DNA of 64,000 bases from Epithemia pelagica (lineage: Eukaryota; Protista; Bacillariophyta): the NCBI GenBank assembly GCA_946965045.2, contig OX337229.1:372001-436000 (forward strand). Reading direction: 5' to 3'. Made by a program: the position numbers and the translations under genes. Under the pieces are notes generated by a model that saw nothing but the letters and a program-made list of their open reading frames with translations, made no database searches and had not been told where the DNA came from. Shown in pieces: positions 14,061 to 23,340 of the stretch; position 1 is the first letter of the stretch, and every line of letters starts with the position of its first letter.

Positions 14061-15299
14061 CTAGCGCTGCGGTCCATTGTCGTCGGGCATGACCTCCTGC
14101 GAGATGATTGTGCTGGTCGTGGGAGGTTGAAATCCAGCGGCATTGGCCCGTACCAATTGTGGCATGGTCATGGGTGTTTCGCCTCGGGTAATGTATTCAA
14201 AATCGTTTTCGTCGACTTGATGATGATTCACGACAGGGTTGTCCTCGTCAATCATGTGAAAGATTTCCAAAATGCCATTGACTTGCCATTCCGGAAAGCC
14301 CATGTCCAGATAGGCCTTTTTGGCCACAGCATAGGGAACTTGTGTAATGGTTACCCGTTGTGGTGGTTGTGGTTGGTGTTGGTGTTTGTGCGGTACCATG
14401 GTGGTACTACCAAACGTTTCGGCCAATTGGTTCAAGGAAAAGCCTGGATGCATGACCAATTTGTAGGTTTGATTGTGATGGAGGATTGGATGCGCCAATA
14501 TATCGGCCGCTGCCTTGCCAACATCATTGACGACAATGGGAGTAAAGCATTTATTGGGATTGCGTGGATCGTACAAGGTCAAATGGTTCTGTTCGTCACC
14601 ACCACCATGATCGGAAGCATGGTCCGTGGCATTGTGGTGGTGGTGGTGGCTGGAAGCAGCAATAGCACTCATGGAATAATGATAATAAAAATTGTCCATA
14701 AACAAGGGCAGACGTAAAATCCCATGACTTTTCAATCCTACCGTTTGAATGGCATGTTCAATCAAGGCCATTTGTCTGCCAAAGATGGTATCGGTATCGG
14801 CCGTTACCATGGAGACGACCAAGGTGTAGGGGACATGGGCATCCTTGGCGGCATGAATGGCATTGAGGGTAATCTTGACTCGATCTTCGTGACCCGGTGT
14901 CACCAAAAAGACACAATCGTACTGACGCAAGAGTGCCGTCAAGTGTGGTCGATTGCCGCCCATGTTGGCCTTGACAATGTGGATACGACTACTGTTAGTA
15001 GAGGATGGCAGGGAGTCGTCGTCGCTGTCGTGGTAGCTGTCGATTGCTTCTTCTTGTGTGATTCGTCGTCCGTGTGCTGCTGCTGGATACGAGGCGTCGT
15101 CCGTTTGGAGACTGTTCCAGGTGAACGACCACAGAGTGGCAAATTTGAGGGGATCCCGAACACCGGCTGTAATCTGAATGGGTTCATGACCATGACGAAT
15201 CAGTAACTGGACCAACGTGGCTCGACCGACATTGCCACTGGCACCCAACACGAGAATTCGTATCTTGCTGCACGGAGACTTGGGGATGCAATTGCCCAT
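14061..15299 (-). CDS. NmrA-like / atypical SDR NAD(P)-binding protein
   Basis: ILVLGASGNVGRATL Rossmann motif, VFLVTP, ILRLPLFMDN, IVVNDVGKAAADIL; N-terminal MGNC. Confidence 0.88.
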   Translation of the reverse strand: MGNCIPKSPCSKIRILVLGASGNVGRATLVQLLIRHGHEPIQITAGVRDPLKFATLWSFTWNSLQTDDASYPAAAHGRRITQEEAIDSYHDSDDDSLPSSTNSSRIHIVKANMGGNRPHLTALLRQYDCVFLVTPGHEDRVKITLNAIHAAKDAHVPYTLVVSMVTADTDTIFGRQMALIEHAIQTVGLKSHGILRLPLFMDNFYYHYSMSAIAASSHHHHHNATDHASDHGGGDEQNHLTLYDPRNPNKCFTPIVVNDVGKAAADILAHPILHHNQTYKLVMHPGFSLNQLAETFGSTTMVPHKHQHQPQPPQRVTITQVPYAVAKKAYLDMGFPEWQVNGILEIFHMIDEDNPVVNHHQVDENDFEYITRGETPMTMPQLVRANAAGFQPPTTSTIISQEVMPDDNGPQR

Positions 15300-16076
15300 T
15301 GTATCGTGTTGTTGTTCTTCTGCTGTTGGTTCTTGTTGTTGTCGTTGGTGTTAGAATCTCTGGTTCTTGCTGGCTTGCTTGCTTGTTTGGTGGACCGAGA
15401 AGAAAGCTTCTCATTTTGGTTGCACAACAAGGGAAAAAAAGAAGAACAAAACCGCCAACCAATGTGGTCGTGCTCGAACGGCTCCTCCTTCCCATTTTTT
15501 CGTTTCCTTTGTCTTTCCGTAATACGTGAACCACTCACGACTCTCGTCGCTGTACTACATCATGTCGTCTCGAATATCTCTCCACACTCCGAAATGCATG
15601 GCTTCGCGTTTCCATCCGCACAGTCTCTTTTTCGGTGGGTGCATGGCCCTTCGCCGAAAGTCATGTGCTGTCTTGTTGGGTTGTCTGTCGTGTTGGCAAT
15701 TGGCAAGAGAGTGCTGTTGCGTTGCGTTGCATCCGTTCGTTCGTTGGGAACATCGTGATGAGAACTCGGAAGCCGCGAAAAAGCGAAGAACATCAAAAGC
15801 GAGCTATCAGCGATCCGACCCTTCACTAGAAGAGAGCGATCGATCCGCGATCGAATCTTTTCCGGACTGACATACGTCCATCACCGACCATCAAAGCCGA
15901 GTTGTTGTTCTGTGTTGGATCGATTGGCATTCTATATCCAACCGAAAAAGTCAGAGTTGATACAGTCGGAGACTTCCAGTGGCGAGGAATACCAAAGAGC
16001 TGAGGCAACCCGATCTTGAAAGGATCCGGTTCGCAAGCAGTGCAAGATCAATTCCATTCAGTTCTTATATAGCAGC

Positions 16077-19000
16077 ATGTTCCGACGACTTGGCCATTCA
16101 ATGAACGGCAGCGGTTGGTTTGGGTCGTCGTCGTTGTTGGGTCCAGTCAAGGTTGCCAGGATGCTATGGATCCTTGTCGTCGCCACTACGTTGGTTCCCC
16201 ACGAAATCTCTGGCTTTGGGGTTTCCCCCAGCACATTGGGAGAAGTGCGAATGCCATTTCCAACAGGGCCCCTGTGGGGAACGGCACCAAACACTCCAAT
16301 CGAGGAATGGCAATCCCCATCCGAAACCACCACGACACGAGAACCTATCCGAGAGGAACCCGTGACAGGCTTGTCGTACGATCCTTCCAAATTCAAGGCG
16401 GGTGCTTTGATTCGCAAAACCATTTTGCACAATCACTTGCATTCCACTCCTCCACGACAATGGAATCCACCCAACCATGAAAATGACGCATCCAATTCCA
16501 CTACGACGGCTTCATCGTCTCCACCACCAGCCATTGTCTTGATTGATGTCGAAAATGTCCGTGGCAAATCTGGCTTTGCTTTGTCACATGCCGAATTGGT
16601 TCATGGCCTATCGGTATGGACCCGAATTTGTCAACTCCAAGGACAAGTCTCCTTGGTTGTCGATCATGGCAATATCGAAGCAGCCTATTATATTCCCACC
16701 TCGCAATTGGCCATTGTCTTTGCCGGTCCACGTTGCAAGGCGGACGATGTCATTGCCCATGACGTTCACGACTTTTTGGCCACGTCGTCCACAGCCATTC
16801 GGACCAATGTCGTGGTGGTCGTCACGGCCGATCGAGGATTGATCGATCGATGTCGTCGACGAACGGGATTGCGCAAAACGGTCACCATTGTGCAACCCTT
16901 GACACTGTTGGAAGATTTGGAACACATTTTCCAAGCCGTGCCCATGCCACAGGAACCACACGACACGACCATGACACACGACGAAACCACGTCTGCGGAT
17001 CCCGCATCCTCCTCCTCCATGGAACCAGAAATCAAGGCCTTGGATCATGAAATTAAATTAGGTGCCGAATTGTTGGAAGCGGAAGCCATGCTTCGAACCA
17101 AGGGAGGGATCAATCACAAACGCAAGGGCAAACTCAAAGCCAAGGTACGATCCTTGCGAGAAAAATTACTGGAATCCTCATCGCCCCTGTTGAATCAAGT
17201 CGTGGCCGATGTCTTGAAACAAGGACCCCAACAAGCCTTTGGTACTAGTGGTAGTCATCATCATCATCCAACGGAATCCTCCGTGTCACAACCAGCAGCA
17301 CCACGACTCTCCCCGGAACAACAAACGGCCTTGTTGGCCCGATGGGAAAAATTGCGCAAATCCATGAGTCGCAAAGAAAAGACGGGAGACCGGGTCATTT
17401 TGGCCGAACAATGGCGACGTCAACTCGAAGAACAAGTCGCGGCATGTCCTCCCACGGCATGGATCAATGCCACGGACCTTTCCAATCACAATCACAATCT
17501 CAATGTTACCAACGGTACAACCGTATCCGATTCCAACACCAACACGACCATGACAACAATAGAAACCACCACAAGAGTGTCCGCCAACATGGCCATGGCC
17601 CATGTGTTTCGATACAATGCCAATCATTATACTCCTCGACCAGGAGCATACGGACAGACATCGTGGATTCAAAATTCCATGCCCTTGTCGTCGTCGTCGT
17701 CTCCCTTTGTCGTTAATGACATGATCTCATTGTCGGCAGCGGCAGCCGATTATGTTCTTCCCAATTCCACGTCCTTGCGATTGGTGGTGATTTCCGATAC
17801 GCATGGCTTCGAAAAAACCTTGGCCAATGAAGAAGACGGAACAAGTCTACCGGATGGTGATGTCTTGTTGCATTTGGGTGATTTTGCCATGGATGGGAGT
17901 CACAAAAAGAGCTCGGCGGTTCGATTCGATCAATGGTTGGCCCAACAACCACATGCCCACAAAATTATCGTTCGTGGCAATCACGATCCTCGAACCTGGT
18001 TCCCCGAAACCTCTGGTGCCACCTTTGTCACGACACCCAAAACGGTCACCATTGGAGACTTTGTCTTTGCCCTTGTACCACACTTGTCGGGAGGCAAATT
18101 GTCCAATCGACTCATGCCCAAGCGGTGTCATGTCTTGGCCTCCCATTTGCCCCCCAAGGATATTTTGGATCATTGCTATTCCGGCAAAAATGCCGGAAGT
18201 TCCGGATTGCGCAAGGGCGTCGAACGCATGGTGAGCAAAACCACGGCACCACCGCCCAGTTTGTGGCTGTGTGGACATATTCATGAATCACGAGGCGCCA
18301 TTCGACATGCATTTGGATCGTCCACAACCAGTCCTTCAAACAACCAAAATGACGGAGCAGACTCGGAAGAGACACTGGTACTCAATGCCGCCAATGCCAA
18401 TTCCGGTATTGCCAAGCGATTGGAGCATGGTCCTGTCGTATTGCAACTCTCCATGGTGGGCAATAAGGGACGTCAAAGTAAATGTCATGTCGAAATTGTG
18501 TCCATGGACAATCAATTTGAATATCTCAATCAAAAAGATCCCAACTTCTTTGAGAAAGCAGCGACGACGACGACGACAACAACAACTACAGCCGATGAGT
18601 ACTATGGTCCCGAAGACTACCCCCTGATTGAGTTGTTGTTGGCGGTGGACTTGGGTTTGCGAACTGGATTTGCCCTTTACAATGATGAGGGACAGTTGTT
18701 GACCTATGAAAACGTAGAGTTTGGCAGCCCACAAGAGCTTGAGGAAGGCGCCTTGCATCGTATCCGTGAGTGGGAAGCGCAATTCAAGCCACTCCCAAAC
18801 GAAAAAGACGCCAAGCCAACGGCTCGCATTAGTCACATTGCCATTGAAGGAGCCGATGTCGAGCTGCGACAAGTGTGGAGAGAGATATGTAGTCAAAGTG
18901 ACTCTGACGACAATACGGACCATGCAGCACCCCGACAGTTGTTGTTGGTCCGTCCCGAGGAATGGCGGGCTGATTTACTTTCCAGCAAGGAAAAGCGATC

Positions 19001-19358
19001 GGGACAAAAGTCCAAGGAAGCGGCTCGTTTGATTGCCCGTCAAGTCGTGGCCGATTTTGGTGTGTGTGGAATTCATCAAGGGAAATTTCCGACCGACGTG
19101 GCCGAAGCCGTCTGTTTGGGCTATCATGTGAGTCGTCGATTGGGATGGATCGTACCTCATCGAGAATCTGCCGTGCGGCGATTTACCAATGGCAATATAA
19201 TCGTGCCAACCACGTCCGCAACACCCTTGACCGTAACCAATGCTACTTCGGTGGTGCCAATTGTGGTTCCCGCCAATGCCACAAGCACGCTATACTCTGA
19301 TAATCCTCTCACATCTGGCCAAATGCAAAATACAACAAAGTCTACGGTCTTGGTATAG
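16077..19358 (+). CDS. 1093-aa fusion: presequence + NYN/PIN (YacP-like) + calcineurin-like metallophosphoesterase (MPPED-like) + RNase H-fold RuvC-like domain
   Basis: Single uninterrupted ORF. NYN: IVLIDVENVRG, LVVDHG, KADDVI, VVVTADRGL. MPP: VISDTHG, LHLGDF, VRGNHD, LCGHIHE. RuvC-like: LLAVDLGLRTG, IAIEG, VRPEEWR, TDVAEAVCLG. Confidence 0.85.
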   Translation: MFRRLGHSMNGSGWFGSSSLLGPVKVARMLWILVVATTLVPHEISGFGVSPSTLGEVRMPFPTGPLWGTAPNTPIEEWQSPSETTTTREPIREEPVTGLSYDPSKFKAGALIRKTILHNHLHSTPPRQWNPPNHENDASNSTTTASSSPPPAIVLIDVENVRGKSGFALSHAELVHGLSVWTRICQLQGQVSLVVDHGNIEAAYYIPTSQLAIVFAGPRCKADDVIAHDVHDFLATSSTAIRTNVVVVVTADRGLIDRCRRRTGLRKTVTIVQPLTLLEDLEHIFQAVPMPQEPHDTTMTHDETTSADPASSSSMEPEIKALDHEIKLGAELLEAEAMLRTKGGINHKRKGKLKAKVRSLREKLLESSSPLLNQVVADVLKQGPQQAFGTSGSHHHHPTESSVSQPAAPRLSPEQQTALLARWEKLRKSMSRKEKTGDRVILAEQWRRQLEEQVAACPPTAWINATDLSNHNHNLNVTNGTTVSDSNTNTTMTTIETTTRVSANMAMAHVFRYNANHYTPRPGAYGQTSWIQNSMPLSSSSSPFVVNDMISLSAAAADYVLPNSTSLRLVVISDTHGFEKTLANEEDGTSLPDGDVLLHLGDFAMDGSHKKSSAVRFDQWLAQQPHAHKIIVRGNHDPRTWFPETSGATFVTTPKTVTIGDFVFALVPHLSGGKLSNRLMPKRCHVLASHLPPKDILDHCYSGKNAGSSGLRKGVERMVSKTTAPPPSLWLCGHIHESRGAIRHAFGSSTTSPSNNQNDGADSEETLVLNAANANSGIAKRLEHGPVVLQLSMVGNKGRQSKCHVEIVSMDNQFEYLNQKDPNFFEKAATTTTTTTTTADEYYGPEDYPLIELLLAVDLGLRTGFALYNDEGQLLTYENVEFGSPQELEEGALHRIREWEAQFKPLPNEKDAKPTARISHIAIEGADVELRQVWREICSQSDSDDNTDHAAPRQLLLVRPEEWRADLLSSKEKRSGQKSKEAARLIARQVVADFGVCGIHQGKFPTDVAEAVCLGYHVSRRLGWIVPHRESAVRRFTNGNIIVPTTSATPLTVTNATSVVPIVVPANATSTLYSDNPLTSGQMQNTTKSTVLV

Positions 19359-19663
19359 AGGTATATATAATCTCCATTTACAAGAGGACGCTTTGATCTC
19401 CCATTGTCAACAGTCGGGAACCAACGTCACGGTGCGACGAGGGCCATGGTACGAGTAAGCTTTGATTCGGAAGCAACTAAACGCGGGCCGGGTTTGGACA
19501 GTCGCACCTGTCGCACCTTGTGCGCTCGGAACGAAGTTCGTTGCGTGAAACACAACCGGATCGGATGAGTTTGGATGGAAAAGGACTCGGTCATCGTCCA
19601 ATTGCGTTGCTCATTTTCCCAAGGCATTCCAAATCACACGGGCATTCGATCCTCCGTGACACC

Positions 19664-20752
19664 ATGCGTATGGGATCAACACTCTATCACCAAGAACGGT
19701 TGCGCATGACTTGCAAGTTTTGGACTACCGTGTTGGTACTGGTGGTGGGTTCCCTCATGGCCATGATTCATGAGGAATACACTCGCAAGACCCTTCTCGC
19801 GGCGCAACAGCGCCACGACCAAGGATGGAAGGCAACTCCTCGGATTCGGCAGCTTAGTATTTTGGGCGAACGAAATAGTGGAACACGATGGACCTACGAG
19901 TAAGGAAATGCTTCCAGTGTTGTCGTCATTGGAAATGAGTGTCAGTTCGGCAGTCTCATTCTCACTCTCTGTTTGCTTTCCAGTCACTTGAACGATTGCT
20001 TTGGTCACGGGTTACGAGTGGTGAGCAACTTGACTCGACACAAGCACTGGTTTCAATATTCCGATCCTTCCCGGTACGAGCACGAAACCTTGGTGATTGC
20101 CCAATTCCGCAACCCGTACGATTGGCTCAAGGCCATGGAACGTGTCCCGCATCATGCTCCCAATCACTTGCGAACCAAGGAGGGAGCTAACGCCAGTTCG
20201 AACGAGTCGGAAAATGATTGGCGTATTTTCTTGAGCAAGGAATGGACCATGAACCGTGTGGGAAAGGATTTGGAATTGTTGGGCAATGAAACGTGTCAAG
20301 AAAACTTTGCCTTTCGAGATATCATTAGCTGCATTCAAGAACCCTTGCCCCGTTCGTATTACCAACACAAGCTCCGCTACTCGGAACAAGAACCCTTTTA
20401 CGAAATGCGCAATGATGGCAGTGGACATGCCTATGCCAATATCATGGAACTGCGAAGTGACAAGATTCTCAACGTTTTGTCCATTCGGGAGTATCCCCAC
20501 ATTGCCAGTGTCTGGGCTACGCAATACGAGTACTTGTTGGAAACGGGCACAGGGTTCTTGTTGGAACGCATTCGCAATGTGACGGGAATTGAACCCCATT
20601 GCCAGGCAGTGGCACCGCAAGTTCGTCCCGAAAAAAAGACGAGAGTGGTCACGCCCGACTTTGCCCGATACGTTCGTGAACATGTCAACTGGACCGTGGA
20701 AGCCATGGTGGGATACGAAGTGGAATGGGCCCGAGAGAATCCAATCGAGTAA
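19664..20752 (+). CDS. Membrane-anchored sulfotransferase-like P-loop protein, 2 exons; intron 19900-19983
   Basis: N-terminal TM segment (FWTTVLVLVVGSLMAMI), ILGERNSGT (5'-PAPS-loop-like), QFRNPYDWLKAM (3'-PB-like). Splicing joins TYD to HLNDCF in frame. Start codon uncertain. Confidence 0.65.
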
Positions 20753-21861
20753 ACTCTGTCGACCTATTGCATGGATGAAGATGCTGGGTTGCTGTGGATG
20801 CACCACCCTGGGTACTGTGAGTGAATAGACATAGTCTTTATTAATATAGGAGTGGTTGCGACGATTCGATAAGAGAGAAGATAGACTTTGGGTTGTGATT
20901 CGGGGTGGACTCCACTTGCTAGCTATGCTATCCCTCTTGTCTATAAAAAGAGACGCTGATGTCAACACGATGGGGGATTGTGTCTTTCGTTGGGGGATGC
21001 GCCCGGGTGGTGACAACCGACAGATGTCCATCCCACCACGATGCGACACTCATGTCCCAGTACTGATTGCCGTACATGCGACGGCAGAGCGACACTTTTG
21101 GATTCCGTGGATCTTCGCGGAAGTCGATTTCCAGATCTGACACAGACACGAGAAGATTCTTCGGAATCTCCGATTCGGATCTTGATGCGCGATTCGCAAT
21201 GATGCAAGCCGATTGTTCGTTCGTCGAAACTCATCCAACCTCCAAACGCGCGCTCCATCAATCGACTGTAGGTCAATGTGTAGTAATACAATTCGGTCGT
21301 TTTTTTTTTCATTCCATTCGATTCGCACCATTTCCATCTCTCGGAACCTCCCACAAATCTTCTGCCAGCCATCACATCATCCCCATGCGATTGAGCGCTT
21401 GCTTGGTTGGTTCTTGTGGCACCTCTCTTTCACGAAAAAAGCTGAAAGCGATCGACACGATTGTCCCGGGTGTCTCGTCTTCGAAAAAGAGAGTGAACAA
21501 CAAGAATCCCTCACGCACAAAAAAAAACAAGAAAGATTACTGCATACATTCATTGGCAGCTCGTTGTCAATCCCATGTTTCGCTAGATTTGCCTGCCTCT
21601 GCGTGTTATCTGTACTAGATTGTGAAATTGATTGATTGTGATTGTTGATGGATGAAGGCATCTCGGTGACTTGACTTATTGTGAACGAGAACTATCGAAA
21701 CCAACCAACAAGAAGGAGATATAGCCCACATTGGATCGTGAACAAGCAAGTATTATATACAACACTGTGTCTCGATTGGAGACCGTTCTGGTATCGAAGG
21801 ATCGTTGTTCCATCCGAGAACCCATTGTACGTTTGGTTTCACAAACACCAAGACATTCGAA

Positions 21862-23340
21862 ATGGACACTTCGTCTTCTTCCCTTGCCTTTCCATTGGCA
21901 TCTGGGTCTTCCAAACTCACCACAACGACCAGCACCAACAATCCAAACCATAACAACAACAATAGCAATAAGGCGGCCAATGGAAACAAGGCTGTGACGG
22001 CCCGAATTGTTTCGAGTTGTGTTGGATCCTTGATTGCCAACTTGTCGGTTCATCCCATGGAAGTGGTCAAGGTGCGGATGCAAAATACCTTTGCGAATCC
22101 GTCGGCAGCAACAGCAATGGCTACGTCTGCGGCATCGACCACGAGTTTTGACTTGTTGCCTGCCTTGTTTCCCTCCTCTTGCCATTCGACCGCGACTACC
22201 ACCACAACCACGACAGCTCTCTTGGAACGCTATCATCAATTTGCTACCAGTTATCATCATCATCATGCTGCACCCTACATTCCCGAAACAACCTTGTGCA
22301 GTGGATCCTCTGCCACGGCCAATCTGTTGGTGGCAGCTCCCGAACGAGCCGCTACCTTGCAGGCCGCTCGCTTTTCGGCCCCACGAGTCGCTCCACCACT
22401 GTCGTTACAGTCTTCCAATGAGTTGAGTCAAACCATTGCCATGATTCGGCATATTGCTCAATACGAAGGAACATCGGGTTTTTACAAGGGCCTTCGTCCC
22501 AGTTTGGCCATGATTGTACCCAACGCAACCGTTTATTATACCATTTACGATTGTTTGGCCGATTACTTTCGGGCCCAATTGGCCAATCATGGTTCTTCCA
22601 ATACAGGCGGCAACACGCCTACATCGTCGGCTGTGAATTCCTGGATTATTCCCTTGGTCGGTGGCAGTACGGCACGGTTGATTGCTTCCACTGTGACGGC
22701 ACCCTTGGAATATTTGCGAACCGTACAGGCTGCCAACTTGGTTGTGGGTGGATACAATCACAGTGGACAAGGCGATGTCTTGGCTCGAAGTGGCGCATCA
22801 GCAGGAGCCGCCCACTCGTCGGGTGGTGGTATTTGGAAACCCTTGGCTCATTTGTGGCGCCATCAAGGTGCTCGCTCCCTCTTTCGAGGATTGGAACCCT
22901 TGTTGTGGCGTGATTTGCCCTTTTCGGCCATTTATTGGCTGTCCGTTGAAAAATTGCGAGAAGTCCAACAGGAACGACAGCAGCAGCAGCAAACGACTTC
23001 GTCGTCATGGATGAATCCACCTCAAGTCGTGTGGGATTTTGGACAAGGCGCCATTGCGGCAACGTTGGCTGCCTTGGGCACGGCACCGGCCGATGTGGTC
23101 AAGACTCGATTTCAAGCACACATGGCTCAAACAGCTGCCCTCACCGCCGCCTCCAAGACGACGACAAGGACGACAAATGTCACACCCTTGACAATTCTTC
23201 AAGATATCTTGTCGCAACCGGCAGGTTGGAAACAACTCTGGAAGGGCAATTTGGCTCGAACGCTCAAATTGGCTCCGTCCTGTGCCATTATGCTGGCCAC
23301 CTATGAATGGGGCAAACGAACCTTGATGGCTTCCTCCTAG
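21862..23340 (+). CDS. Mitochondrial carrier, SLC25A39/40 (Mtm1)-like
   Basis: Three carrier signature repeats: HPMEVVKVRMQ, APLEYLRT, APADVVKTRFQ; also LWRDLPFSAIYW and APSCAIMLATYEWGK. Confidence 0.9.
   Translation: MDTSSSSLAFPLASGSSKLTTTTSTNNPNHNNNNSNKAANGNKAVTARIVSSCVGSLIANLSVHPMEVVKVRMQNTFANPSAATAMATSAASTTSFDLLPALFPSSCHSTATTTTTTTALLERYHQFATSYHHHHAAPYIPETTLCSGSSATANLLVAAPERAATLQAARFSAPRVAPPLSLQSSNELSQTIAMIRHIAQYEGTSGFYKGLRPSLAMIVPNATVYYTIYDCLADYFRAQLANHGSSNTGGNTPTSSAVNSWIIPLVGGSTARLIASTVTAPLEYLRTVQAANLVVGGYNHSGQGDVLARSGASAGAAHSSGGGIWKPLAHLWRHQGARSLFRGLEPLLWRDLPFSAIYWLSVEKLREVQQERQQQQQTTSSSWMNPPQVVWDFGQGAIAATLAALGTAPADVVKTRFQAHMAQTAALTAASKTTTRTTNVTPLTILQDILSQPAGWKQLWKGNLARTLKLAPSCAIMLATYEWGKRTLMASS

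Follow-up and report, generated by a model that had tools for sequence, protein, structure and literature searches.

Rae1 (YacP) of Bacillus subtilis is a ribosome-dependent RNase and the only characterised member of the YacP family, relatives of which have been reported from Firmicutes, cyanobacteria and chloroplasts (PMC10351889). MOC1, described from green plants and Chlamydomonas, is a chloroplast-located junction resolvase with a tetrad of acidic residues (PMC7078210). MPPED orthologues hydrolyse phosphodiesters, including cyclic AMP and GMP (cAMP, cGMP; PMC10547211). Here we analyse a gene of the pennate diatom Epithemia pelagica whose product unites domains resembling all three in a single polypeptide. 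It lies in a stretch of 64,000 nucleotides, hereafter the window (assembly GCA_946965045.2, contig OX337229.1, positions 372,001 to 436,000 of the forward strand), and all coordinates below are those of the window. A literature search found no paper combining the three domain terms, and none linking Holliday-junction resolvases to diatom plastids. An initial annotation of the window had supposed the combination to be undescribed, and no description of it was found.

The gene encodes a conserved single polypeptide made of three modules, all predicted to be catalytically intact, and of a conserved middle region. The novelty lies not in the kinds of domain, which are known, but in the architecture, in an unannotated RuvC-fold family behind the C-terminus and in a possible MOC1-like role in the plastids of the red lineage. 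Organelle nucleic acids are the probable substrate of the protein, which may be to diatoms what the resolvase MOC1 is to green plastids. The reading that we favour as a whole, namely a three-module nucleic-acid enzyme of an organelle, most likely the complex plastid, with a MOC1-like C-terminus, is a tentative one that falls a little short of being probable. The parts of the gene are as follows.

16077..19358, + strand: whole open reading frame (ORF), 1093 amino acids plus stop, ATG start; three enzyme domains in one polypeptide
16161..16217, + strand: signal-peptide-like hydrophobic segment, amino acids 29-40, MLWILVVATTLV, then PHEISG46↓F47 (↓, candidate cleavage site); from sequence and hydropathy
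16518..16946, + strand: YacP/Rae1-type NYN (PIN-like) nuclease domain, amino acids 148-290; from AlphaFold2 model, structure searches and profiles
17028..17444, + strand: conserved middle region, amino acids 318-456; from alignment conservation
17754..18521, + strand: MPPED1/2-type (class III) metallophosphoesterase, amino acids 560-815; from Pfam and profile, with five metal-binding motifs
18609..19220, + strand: RuvC-clan (RNase H-fold) junction-resolvase-like domain, amino acids 845-1048; from AlphaFold2 model and structure searches
19221..19355, + strand: C-terminal tail, amino acids 1049-1093; Thr/Ser/Asn-rich, with no counterpart in homologues

The initial annotation had announced a single 1093-residue ORF with three enzyme domains, a YacP/Rae1-type NYN domain, an MPPED-type phosphoesterase and a RuvC-fold nuclease, with intact catalytic residues and domains of bacterial type. 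The ORF starts with ATG and has no internal stop, and every motif listed for the leader and the three domains was found in place. The three domain assignments hold, those of the NYN and RuvC-like domains having been upheld by structure searches, and so does the bacterial type of the domains. The same architecture was found in other organisms.

A whole-length search returned more than 120 proteins of 600-1080 amino acids, predominantly from diatoms; named sources of the fusion are Fistulifera, Cylindrotheca, Nitzschia, Fragilariopsis, Seminavis and Dactyliosolen. More than 100 homologues are colinear with residues 154-1044 of the query, with which an intronless gene is consistent. Conservation is absent from the linkers and from both ends of the protein, about 150 residues at the start and the last 45. 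Public names of the homologues are limited to "calcineurin-like phosphoesterase" or "hypothetical protein". Across 39-45 aligned homologues sharing 33-72% identity, the named metal-binding and catalytic residues of all three domains were invariant or at least 90% conserved. Two homologues (P0046 and P0062) are complete MMETSP transcriptome ORFs spanning residues 140-1049, so that in other diatoms the three domains share one transcript.

The frame is open over 3279 nt, and base composition is even along it. The same organism's assemblies contain a second copy of the ORF (locus L009), a haplotype or close strain of the window gene, which keeps the frame and encodes a 96% identical protein; 100 substitutions separate the two ORFs. 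Over positions 15700-19700, the two versions (X1-X3, L009) diverge by about 3% in DNA and about 4% in protein. The runs bearing the locus (X1-X3) comprised DNA contigs only, with two haplotypes and no joints, and the two versions are consistent with a heterozygous diploid. The contigs of the assemblies end at variable linkers of the ORF. The ratio of non-synonymous to synonymous substitution rates between the window copy and L009 was 0.21 for the whole ORF and 0.10 for the NYN domain, and the phosphoesterase showed no non-synonymous and five synonymous changes; these figures, from small counts, point to purifying selection. A poly-Thr linker (T x10, positions 18537-18572, in the region of residues 821-832) between the phosphoesterase and the resolvase-like domain is not equally long in the two sequence versions, and small deletions occur in run X2 at 18563-18570.

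It is extremely improbable that two or three adjoining genes were read as one ORF by chance. Such an artefact would fit the run search, which found no RNA run of this organism, and the split forms found elsewhere. However, it would have to leave open a frame of this length in a second haplotype as well, despite the 100 substitutions, and it is at odds with the colinear architecture of more than 100 homologues, complete transcriptome ORFs included; moreover, the linkers contain neither a stop codon nor a start-like break.

Split forms of the protein do exist. P0104 (626 amino acids, L011:6001-7881) consists of the NYN domain, the middle region and the phosphoesterase, without the resolvase domain, for which there is no room, as the next gene begins 33 bp further on the opposite strand. 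This adjoining gene (L011 7917-8702, minus strand) was considered as a separate resolvase and rejected as unrelated. Conversely, stand-alone resolvase-like proteins occur as real transcripts in Rhizochromulina (P0173) and in another MMETSP organism (P0178). One stand-alone resolvase-like gene shares its contig with a gene for a light-harvesting protein, and a 920-residue fusion from a GC-rich organism (P0120) is placed outside the diatom clade. The coexistence of fused and split forms across algae argues that the parts would act in one pathway.

The C-terminal domain was modelled with high confidence (AlphaFold2; predicted local distance difference test, pLDDT, 93; predicted template modelling score 0.91), with the strand-strand-strand-helix-strand-helix-strand order of the RNase H fold. 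In this model, residues 845-1048 fold as a RuvC-clan junction resolvase. The top Foldseek matches were RuvC of Thermus, Deinococcus and E. coli (expectation value, E, 1e-5). With VIA-align, the first 20 ranks were all junction resolvases, led by the fowlpox enzyme (Z 14.6, root-mean-square deviation, rmsd, 2.1 Å over 134 of 148 residues) and followed by D. radiodurans RuvC (Z 13.5), phage RuvC (13.4), ZmMOC1 (13.4) and E. coli RuvC (12.8). In a search of 48,161 chains that was independent of Foldseek, ranks 1-7 were again all occupied by junction resolvases (Z 11.2-13.6).

The model places a putative acidic tetrad at the positions expected for this clan: D858 at the end of strand 1 (AVDLG), E924 at the end of strand 4 (IEG), and D1007 and E1010 at the start of the last helix (DVAEA). 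Among diatom homologues, D858, E924 and E1010 are invariant and D1007 is at least 90% conserved; with bacterial kin added, E924 stays invariant and the other three are each conserved at 90% or more. W963, R964 and K980 are further invariant residues. Non-significant hhalign alignments limited to the first strand put D858 on D7 of E. coli RuvC (E 0.24 and 0.018). The best PDB sequence match of a widened C-terminal profile was NtMOC1 (E 0.19), with E1010 falling on E258, a proven catalytic residue of the NtMOC1 tetrad (PMC7078210).

Bacterial and phage RuvC and poxvirus A22 are the closest structures (1hjr, 4ld0, 7xhj, 4ktw, 6p7b, 5e6f; Z 12.3-14.6, rmsd 2.0-3.4 Å), and the putative tetrad occupies the same structural positions as theirs. 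In contrast to these enzymes, the last acidic residue of the diatom family is Glu, not Asp, and none of 45 family members matches the Pfam models for RuvC, Pox_A22 or Ydc2. MOC1 (6kvn, 6is8) shares the RuvC-clan fold (Z 12.7-13.4) and the motifs W-[KR]-x-E...K-E-R and A-E-A; by analogy, service in an organelle would be shared as well. It differs in having D-x-D on strand 1, where the diatom family has a single Asp, and in an aromatic, base-recognising loop that is absent from the diatom family. The latter keeps the RuvC-like Asp three residues before the Glu, and its domain is fused to other enzymes.

RNase H-fold proteins other than junction resolvases also resemble the model, and all modules might act on organellar RNA: the NYN domain would cut ribosome-bound mRNA, the C-terminal domain would be YqgF/RuvX-like and serve rRNA maturation or act on RNA-DNA hybrids, and the phosphoesterase would open 2',3'-cyclic ends or degrade 2',3'-cyclic nucleoside monophosphates. 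The ribosome dependence of Rae1, the sole characterised YacP enzyme (PMC10351889), speaks for it, as do ESM Atlas feature and shape neighbours that include a cluster automatically named "YqgF family", and structural matches to YqgF, RuvX, Tex and Spt6. These matches, however, reach only Z 9-10, whereas junction resolvases reach Z 12-14.6 and hold the top ranks of the 48,161-chain search; likewise, the D-x-x-E spacing on the last helix is that of RuvC and MOC1. Therefore a role at DNA junctions is favoured for the C-terminal domain, and we consider the purely RNA-directed enzyme rather unlikely.

The C-terminal domain belongs to a larger family. A profile search of 1.84 billion representatives retrieved 451 proteins, including stand-alone ones of 150-250 amino acids. 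The bacterial relatives, of about 155 amino acids, are 27-35% identical, are all called "hypothetical" and reach E 1e-20 to 1e-27 with a profile built from diatoms only; no other ESM Atlas proteins come closer to the domain in shape (template modelling score 0.85-0.91). The bacterial family is present in at least 403 species genomes, from Chloroflexota, Gemmatimonadota, Rhodothermales, Planctomycetota, Desulfobacterota, Nitrospirota and Armatimonadota (for example Herpetosiphon, Roseiflexus, Longimicrobium, Rhodothermales, Geobacter and Phycisphaerae), and has no Pfam or NCBIfam model. No cyanobacterium was found among the best 80 bacterial genome loci. It shares with the diatom domain the motifs D-L-G-L-R-T-G, E-G, W-R, K and D-A-A-E-A. 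Unlike the diatom domain, it stands alone and is devoid of the R-Y-T-N-G motif found in eukaryotes only. This motif, R-F/Y-T-N-G-x-I/V-I/V-x-P at positions 19176-19205 (residues 1034-1043), is conserved in fused and stand-alone eukaryotic forms and missing from the bacterial relatives; it may serve interaction or regulation peculiar to eukaryotes.

In a maximum-likelihood tree, eukaryotic sequences grouped together with support 91/86, and the diatom fusions formed a clade supported by 99/97. One fragment labelled bacterial groups with the eukaryotes and bears the C-terminal motif peculiar to them; the hypothesis of a single eukaryotic clade was not rejected (AU p 0.47). Among the 80 genome loci, no neighbour resembled the NYN domain or the middle region, and there was one weak phosphoesterase match; three further bacterial genomes had no common neighbours. 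A BACON-domain lipoprotein gene recurred at two loci and is unrelated to the diatom protein, and the largest neighbour "clusters" proved to be antisense ORFs lying over the gene itself.

The NYN and RuvC-like domains of the query are invisible to Pfam and were recognised by profile or structure evidence. For the former, the motifs are D157-x-E159-N160, D196, A222-D223-D224 and T250-A251-D252; E159, N160, D196, D223, D224 and D252 are invariant, and D157 is conserved in at least 90% of the homologues. According to its AlphaFold2 model (pLDDT 91), the segment of residues 148-290 has the Rae1-type NYN fold. The three best Foldseek matches were all Rae1/YacP, and VIA-align gave Z 14.6 for Rae1 structure 5mq9 (rmsd 2.9 Å, 119 residues) and 13.5 for 5mq8, against 9.2 for the next family and about 8 for FEN-type PIN domains. 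ESM Atlas features, taken as a lead only, point to YacP clusters. PDB sequence and profile searches gave nothing significant, the weak matches being Fcf1/Utp24 PIN domains (E 0.37-1.6).

The Pfam model NYN_YacP (PF05991) scores 12 bits on the query (E 0.21), below its threshold of 24.6 bits; it is matched by 23 of 45 homologous domains (E at most 0.1, best 2.9e-5), and three short relatives (P0257, P0271 and P0284) pass the threshold with 25.3-29.4 bits. Beyond the fold, the motifs also agree with those of Rae1: strand 1 bears D-x-x-N, and a second Asp, A-D-D and T-x-D follow in order. By alignment offset, D157 (model residue 10) falls on Rae1 D7, and D223/D224 would, to judge from the motif, match Rae1 D81; the D7N D81N double mutant of Rae1 is catalytically inactive (PMC10351889). 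In contrast to Rae1, the diatom NYN is one domain within a eukaryotic fusion of 1093 residues, and that of the query remains below the Pfam threshold.

The phosphoesterase was the only part for which a Pfam or NCBIfam model passed its threshold, whether the whole protein or pieces of it were searched (Metallophos, PF00149, 38.1 bits versus a cutoff of 21.5). It displays the motifs D574-x-H576-G, G601-D602, G634-N635-H636-D637 and G733-H734-x-H736, in which D574, H576, D602, N635, H636, H734 and H736 are invariant, as is H690. The best solved relative is MPPED2 (3rl4), found by the single sequence at E 8.7e-9 and by the profile, over both domain halves, at 2.8e-24; the next PDB profile match had E 5.6e-4. 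A sub-threshold likeness to metallophosphoesterase (MPE) nucleases of DNA repair was also seen (PdeM, E 9.7e-5; Nuclease MPE 6nvo, E 1.4e-3). MPPED1, MPPED2 (239FB) and Drosophila dMpped (3rl3-3rl5) are thus the best sequence match and have all metal ligands in common with the diatom domain, including the His of G-H-I-H-E; unlike them, the diatom domain contains insertions and has two nucleases as fusion partners.

The middle region ends in the motif R-x-E-x-T-G-D-R-x-x-L-A-E-x-L-R-R, and searches of PDB, Pfam and the Atlas returned no match. From its composition, it looks helical or coiled-coil.

If the favoured reading of an organelle nucleic-acid enzyme is followed, the modules could work as follows. 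The hydrophobic leader would take the protein into the secretory route and on to a DNA-holding organelle, most likely the complex plastid. As a dimer, the C-terminal domain would cleave organelle DNA at four-way junctions or branches, in the way of MOC1 in green plastids. RNA would be the target of the NYN domain, either on stalled organellar ribosomes in the manner of Rae1, or where it is associated with replicating or recombining DNA. Finally, the phosphodiesterase, an MPPED-type module with a binuclear metal site, might remove phosphodiester-linked end groups or hydrolyse nucleotide products. The initial annotation had seen in the three domains a machine that cuts, heals ends and resolves branched structures, and this scheme appears weak in its second step: metal-dependent PIN/NYN and RuvC nucleases leave 3'-OH and 5'-phosphate ends and no cyclic phosphate, so that healing of ends is not implied by the two nucleases. 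The same chemistry also speaks against the purely RNA-directed enzyme, in which the phosphoesterase was to open cyclic ends.

As to the location of the protein, the hydrophobic segment of the leader has a Kyte-Doolittle value of 2.5 across residues 30-40, and M29 is a possible alternative start. The site ISG46↓F47 is a candidate for ASAFAP-type cleavage. A hydrophobic leader, usually at the very start, was found in 64 of the 77 homologues with a complete N-terminus, and in 58 of these 64 the 30 residues that follow it are net-positive. Textbook-like sites occur in some fusion homologues (AHA↓FAAS, VHA↓FASS, AAS↓FAST), and ISG↓FGV is likewise present. Stand-alone eukaryotic resolvase-like relatives carry a signal peptide with F, Y or L after it (SARG↓F, CSS↓F, VMS↓F, SES↓Y, SSA↓L); P0156 and P0166, split forms noted beside P0173 and P0178, are of this kind. 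Entry into the secretory route is therefore likely, judging from these sequence features. Organelle location is also supported by analogy, since Rae1 relatives occur in chloroplasts (PMC10351889) and MOC1 is a plastid enzyme (PMC7078210).

The plastid targeting proposed by the initial annotation is not established. The leader followed by G↓F in the query, and the leader and positive spacer of the homologues, agree with it; the Phe site, present in only 12 of the 64 leaders, and the neutral to acidic spacer of the query do not. A complex-plastid destination is plausible, and we judge the chances for and against it to be about evenly balanced.

A mitochondrial protein of the same biochemistry, analogous to fungal Cce1/Ydc2 and not to plastid MOC1, would account for the many short, basic leaders with few acidic residues, which are also compatible with a presequence (for example M-L-L-R-S-L-L-L-Y-F-L-A-A-Q-H-K), for the lack of a conserved Phe at +1, and for the structural matches of the C-terminal model to the mitochondrial RuvC-fold proteins Ydc2 and TEFM (Z 11-12). 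Yet the leaders open with 11-16 strongly hydrophobic residues, in the manner of signal peptides, ASAFAP-like textbook sites are found in several homologues and in the stand-alone relatives, and the named holders are all plastid-bearing algae (diatoms, Rhizochromulina, Isochrysis). This location is in our judgement unlikely.

An enzyme that is secreted or retained in the endoplasmic reticulum lumen or the periplastidal space, such as an extracellular scavenger of nucleic acids or phosphodiesters for phosphate, would suit a conserved signal-peptide-like leader whose +1 position is mostly not aromatic. Icc-type phosphoesterases can serve phosphate scavenging, and the query has 10 N-x-S/T sequons. 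But these sequons lie in non-conserved linkers, conserved cysteines are few in the catalytic domains, and the spacer past the leader is net-positive and acid-poor, like a transit peptide. Nor do we know of a report of a secreted nuclease with a junction-specific resolvase fold or a YacP domain. Such a destination is quite improbable.

Several observations weigh against our favoured reading of a plastid enzyme with a resolvase-like C-terminus. With regard to targeting, the 12 leaders with a (-3,-1)↓F site compare with 6.3 +/- 2.1 expected (15 of 1000 shuffles reach 12); F, W, Y and L at +1 taken together show no enrichment (29 versus 26 expected), and in the query the 30 residues past the leader have a net charge of -1, unlike those of most homologues. 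With regard to junction resolution, the RuvC-clan Pfam models (PF02075, PF04848 and PF09159) match none of the 45 family members, the C-terminal domain has no match in Pfam or NCBIfam nor a significant one in a PDB sequence search, and its sequence links to RuvC and MOC1 are all non-significant (E 0.018-0.24). An aromatic wedge after the catalytic Glu, E-X2-4-Y/F, which has been described for RuvC, Ydc2 and MOC1 (PMC7078210), is not conserved: the consensus reads E-G-x-D-x-x-L-x-x-x-W and lacks Y or F from +3 to +5. The bacterial relatives have no conserved gene neighbours and so give no hint of function, and the run search yielded no RNA run from E. pelagica itself. Lastly, MPPED-type enzymes are known for small-molecule diesters, not for nucleic-acid ends.

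Going further than the favoured reading, the C-terminal domain could be an unrecognised branch of the RuvC clan that was acquired once, from non-cyanobacterial bacteria, and that is the missing resolvase of red-lineage complex plastids, replacing MOC1 there; in pennate diatoms, it would have been coupled to a Rae1-type RNase and a phosphodiesterase, tying DNA-junction resolution to the clearing of RNA. We offer this as a conjecture, doubtful when taken in full.

Two neighbouring genes complete the description of the locus. Upstream, at 14061-15299 on the - strand, lies an NmrA-like gene (PF05368 was matched on the allelic copy in L009) with a His-rich insertion, HHHHHNATDHASDH. The downstream ORF, at 21805-23340 on the + strand, corresponds to a mitochondrial-carrier gene (PF00153) on the allelic locus L009 and has a long Thr/Ser/Asn-rich N-terminal extension.

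How recombination intermediates are resolved, and how RNA is policed, in the plastids and mitochondria of diatoms is largely unknown. The protein described here is a concrete candidate, conserved across diatoms, with three active sites that can be mutated, and is directly testable in transformable diatoms. Its C-terminus exposes a RuvC-fold family without a Pfam or NCBIfam model that is present in at least 403 bacterial species, and the fused and split forms connect this family to YacP-type RNases and MPPED-type phosphodiesterases, both of which are physiologically poorly defined.

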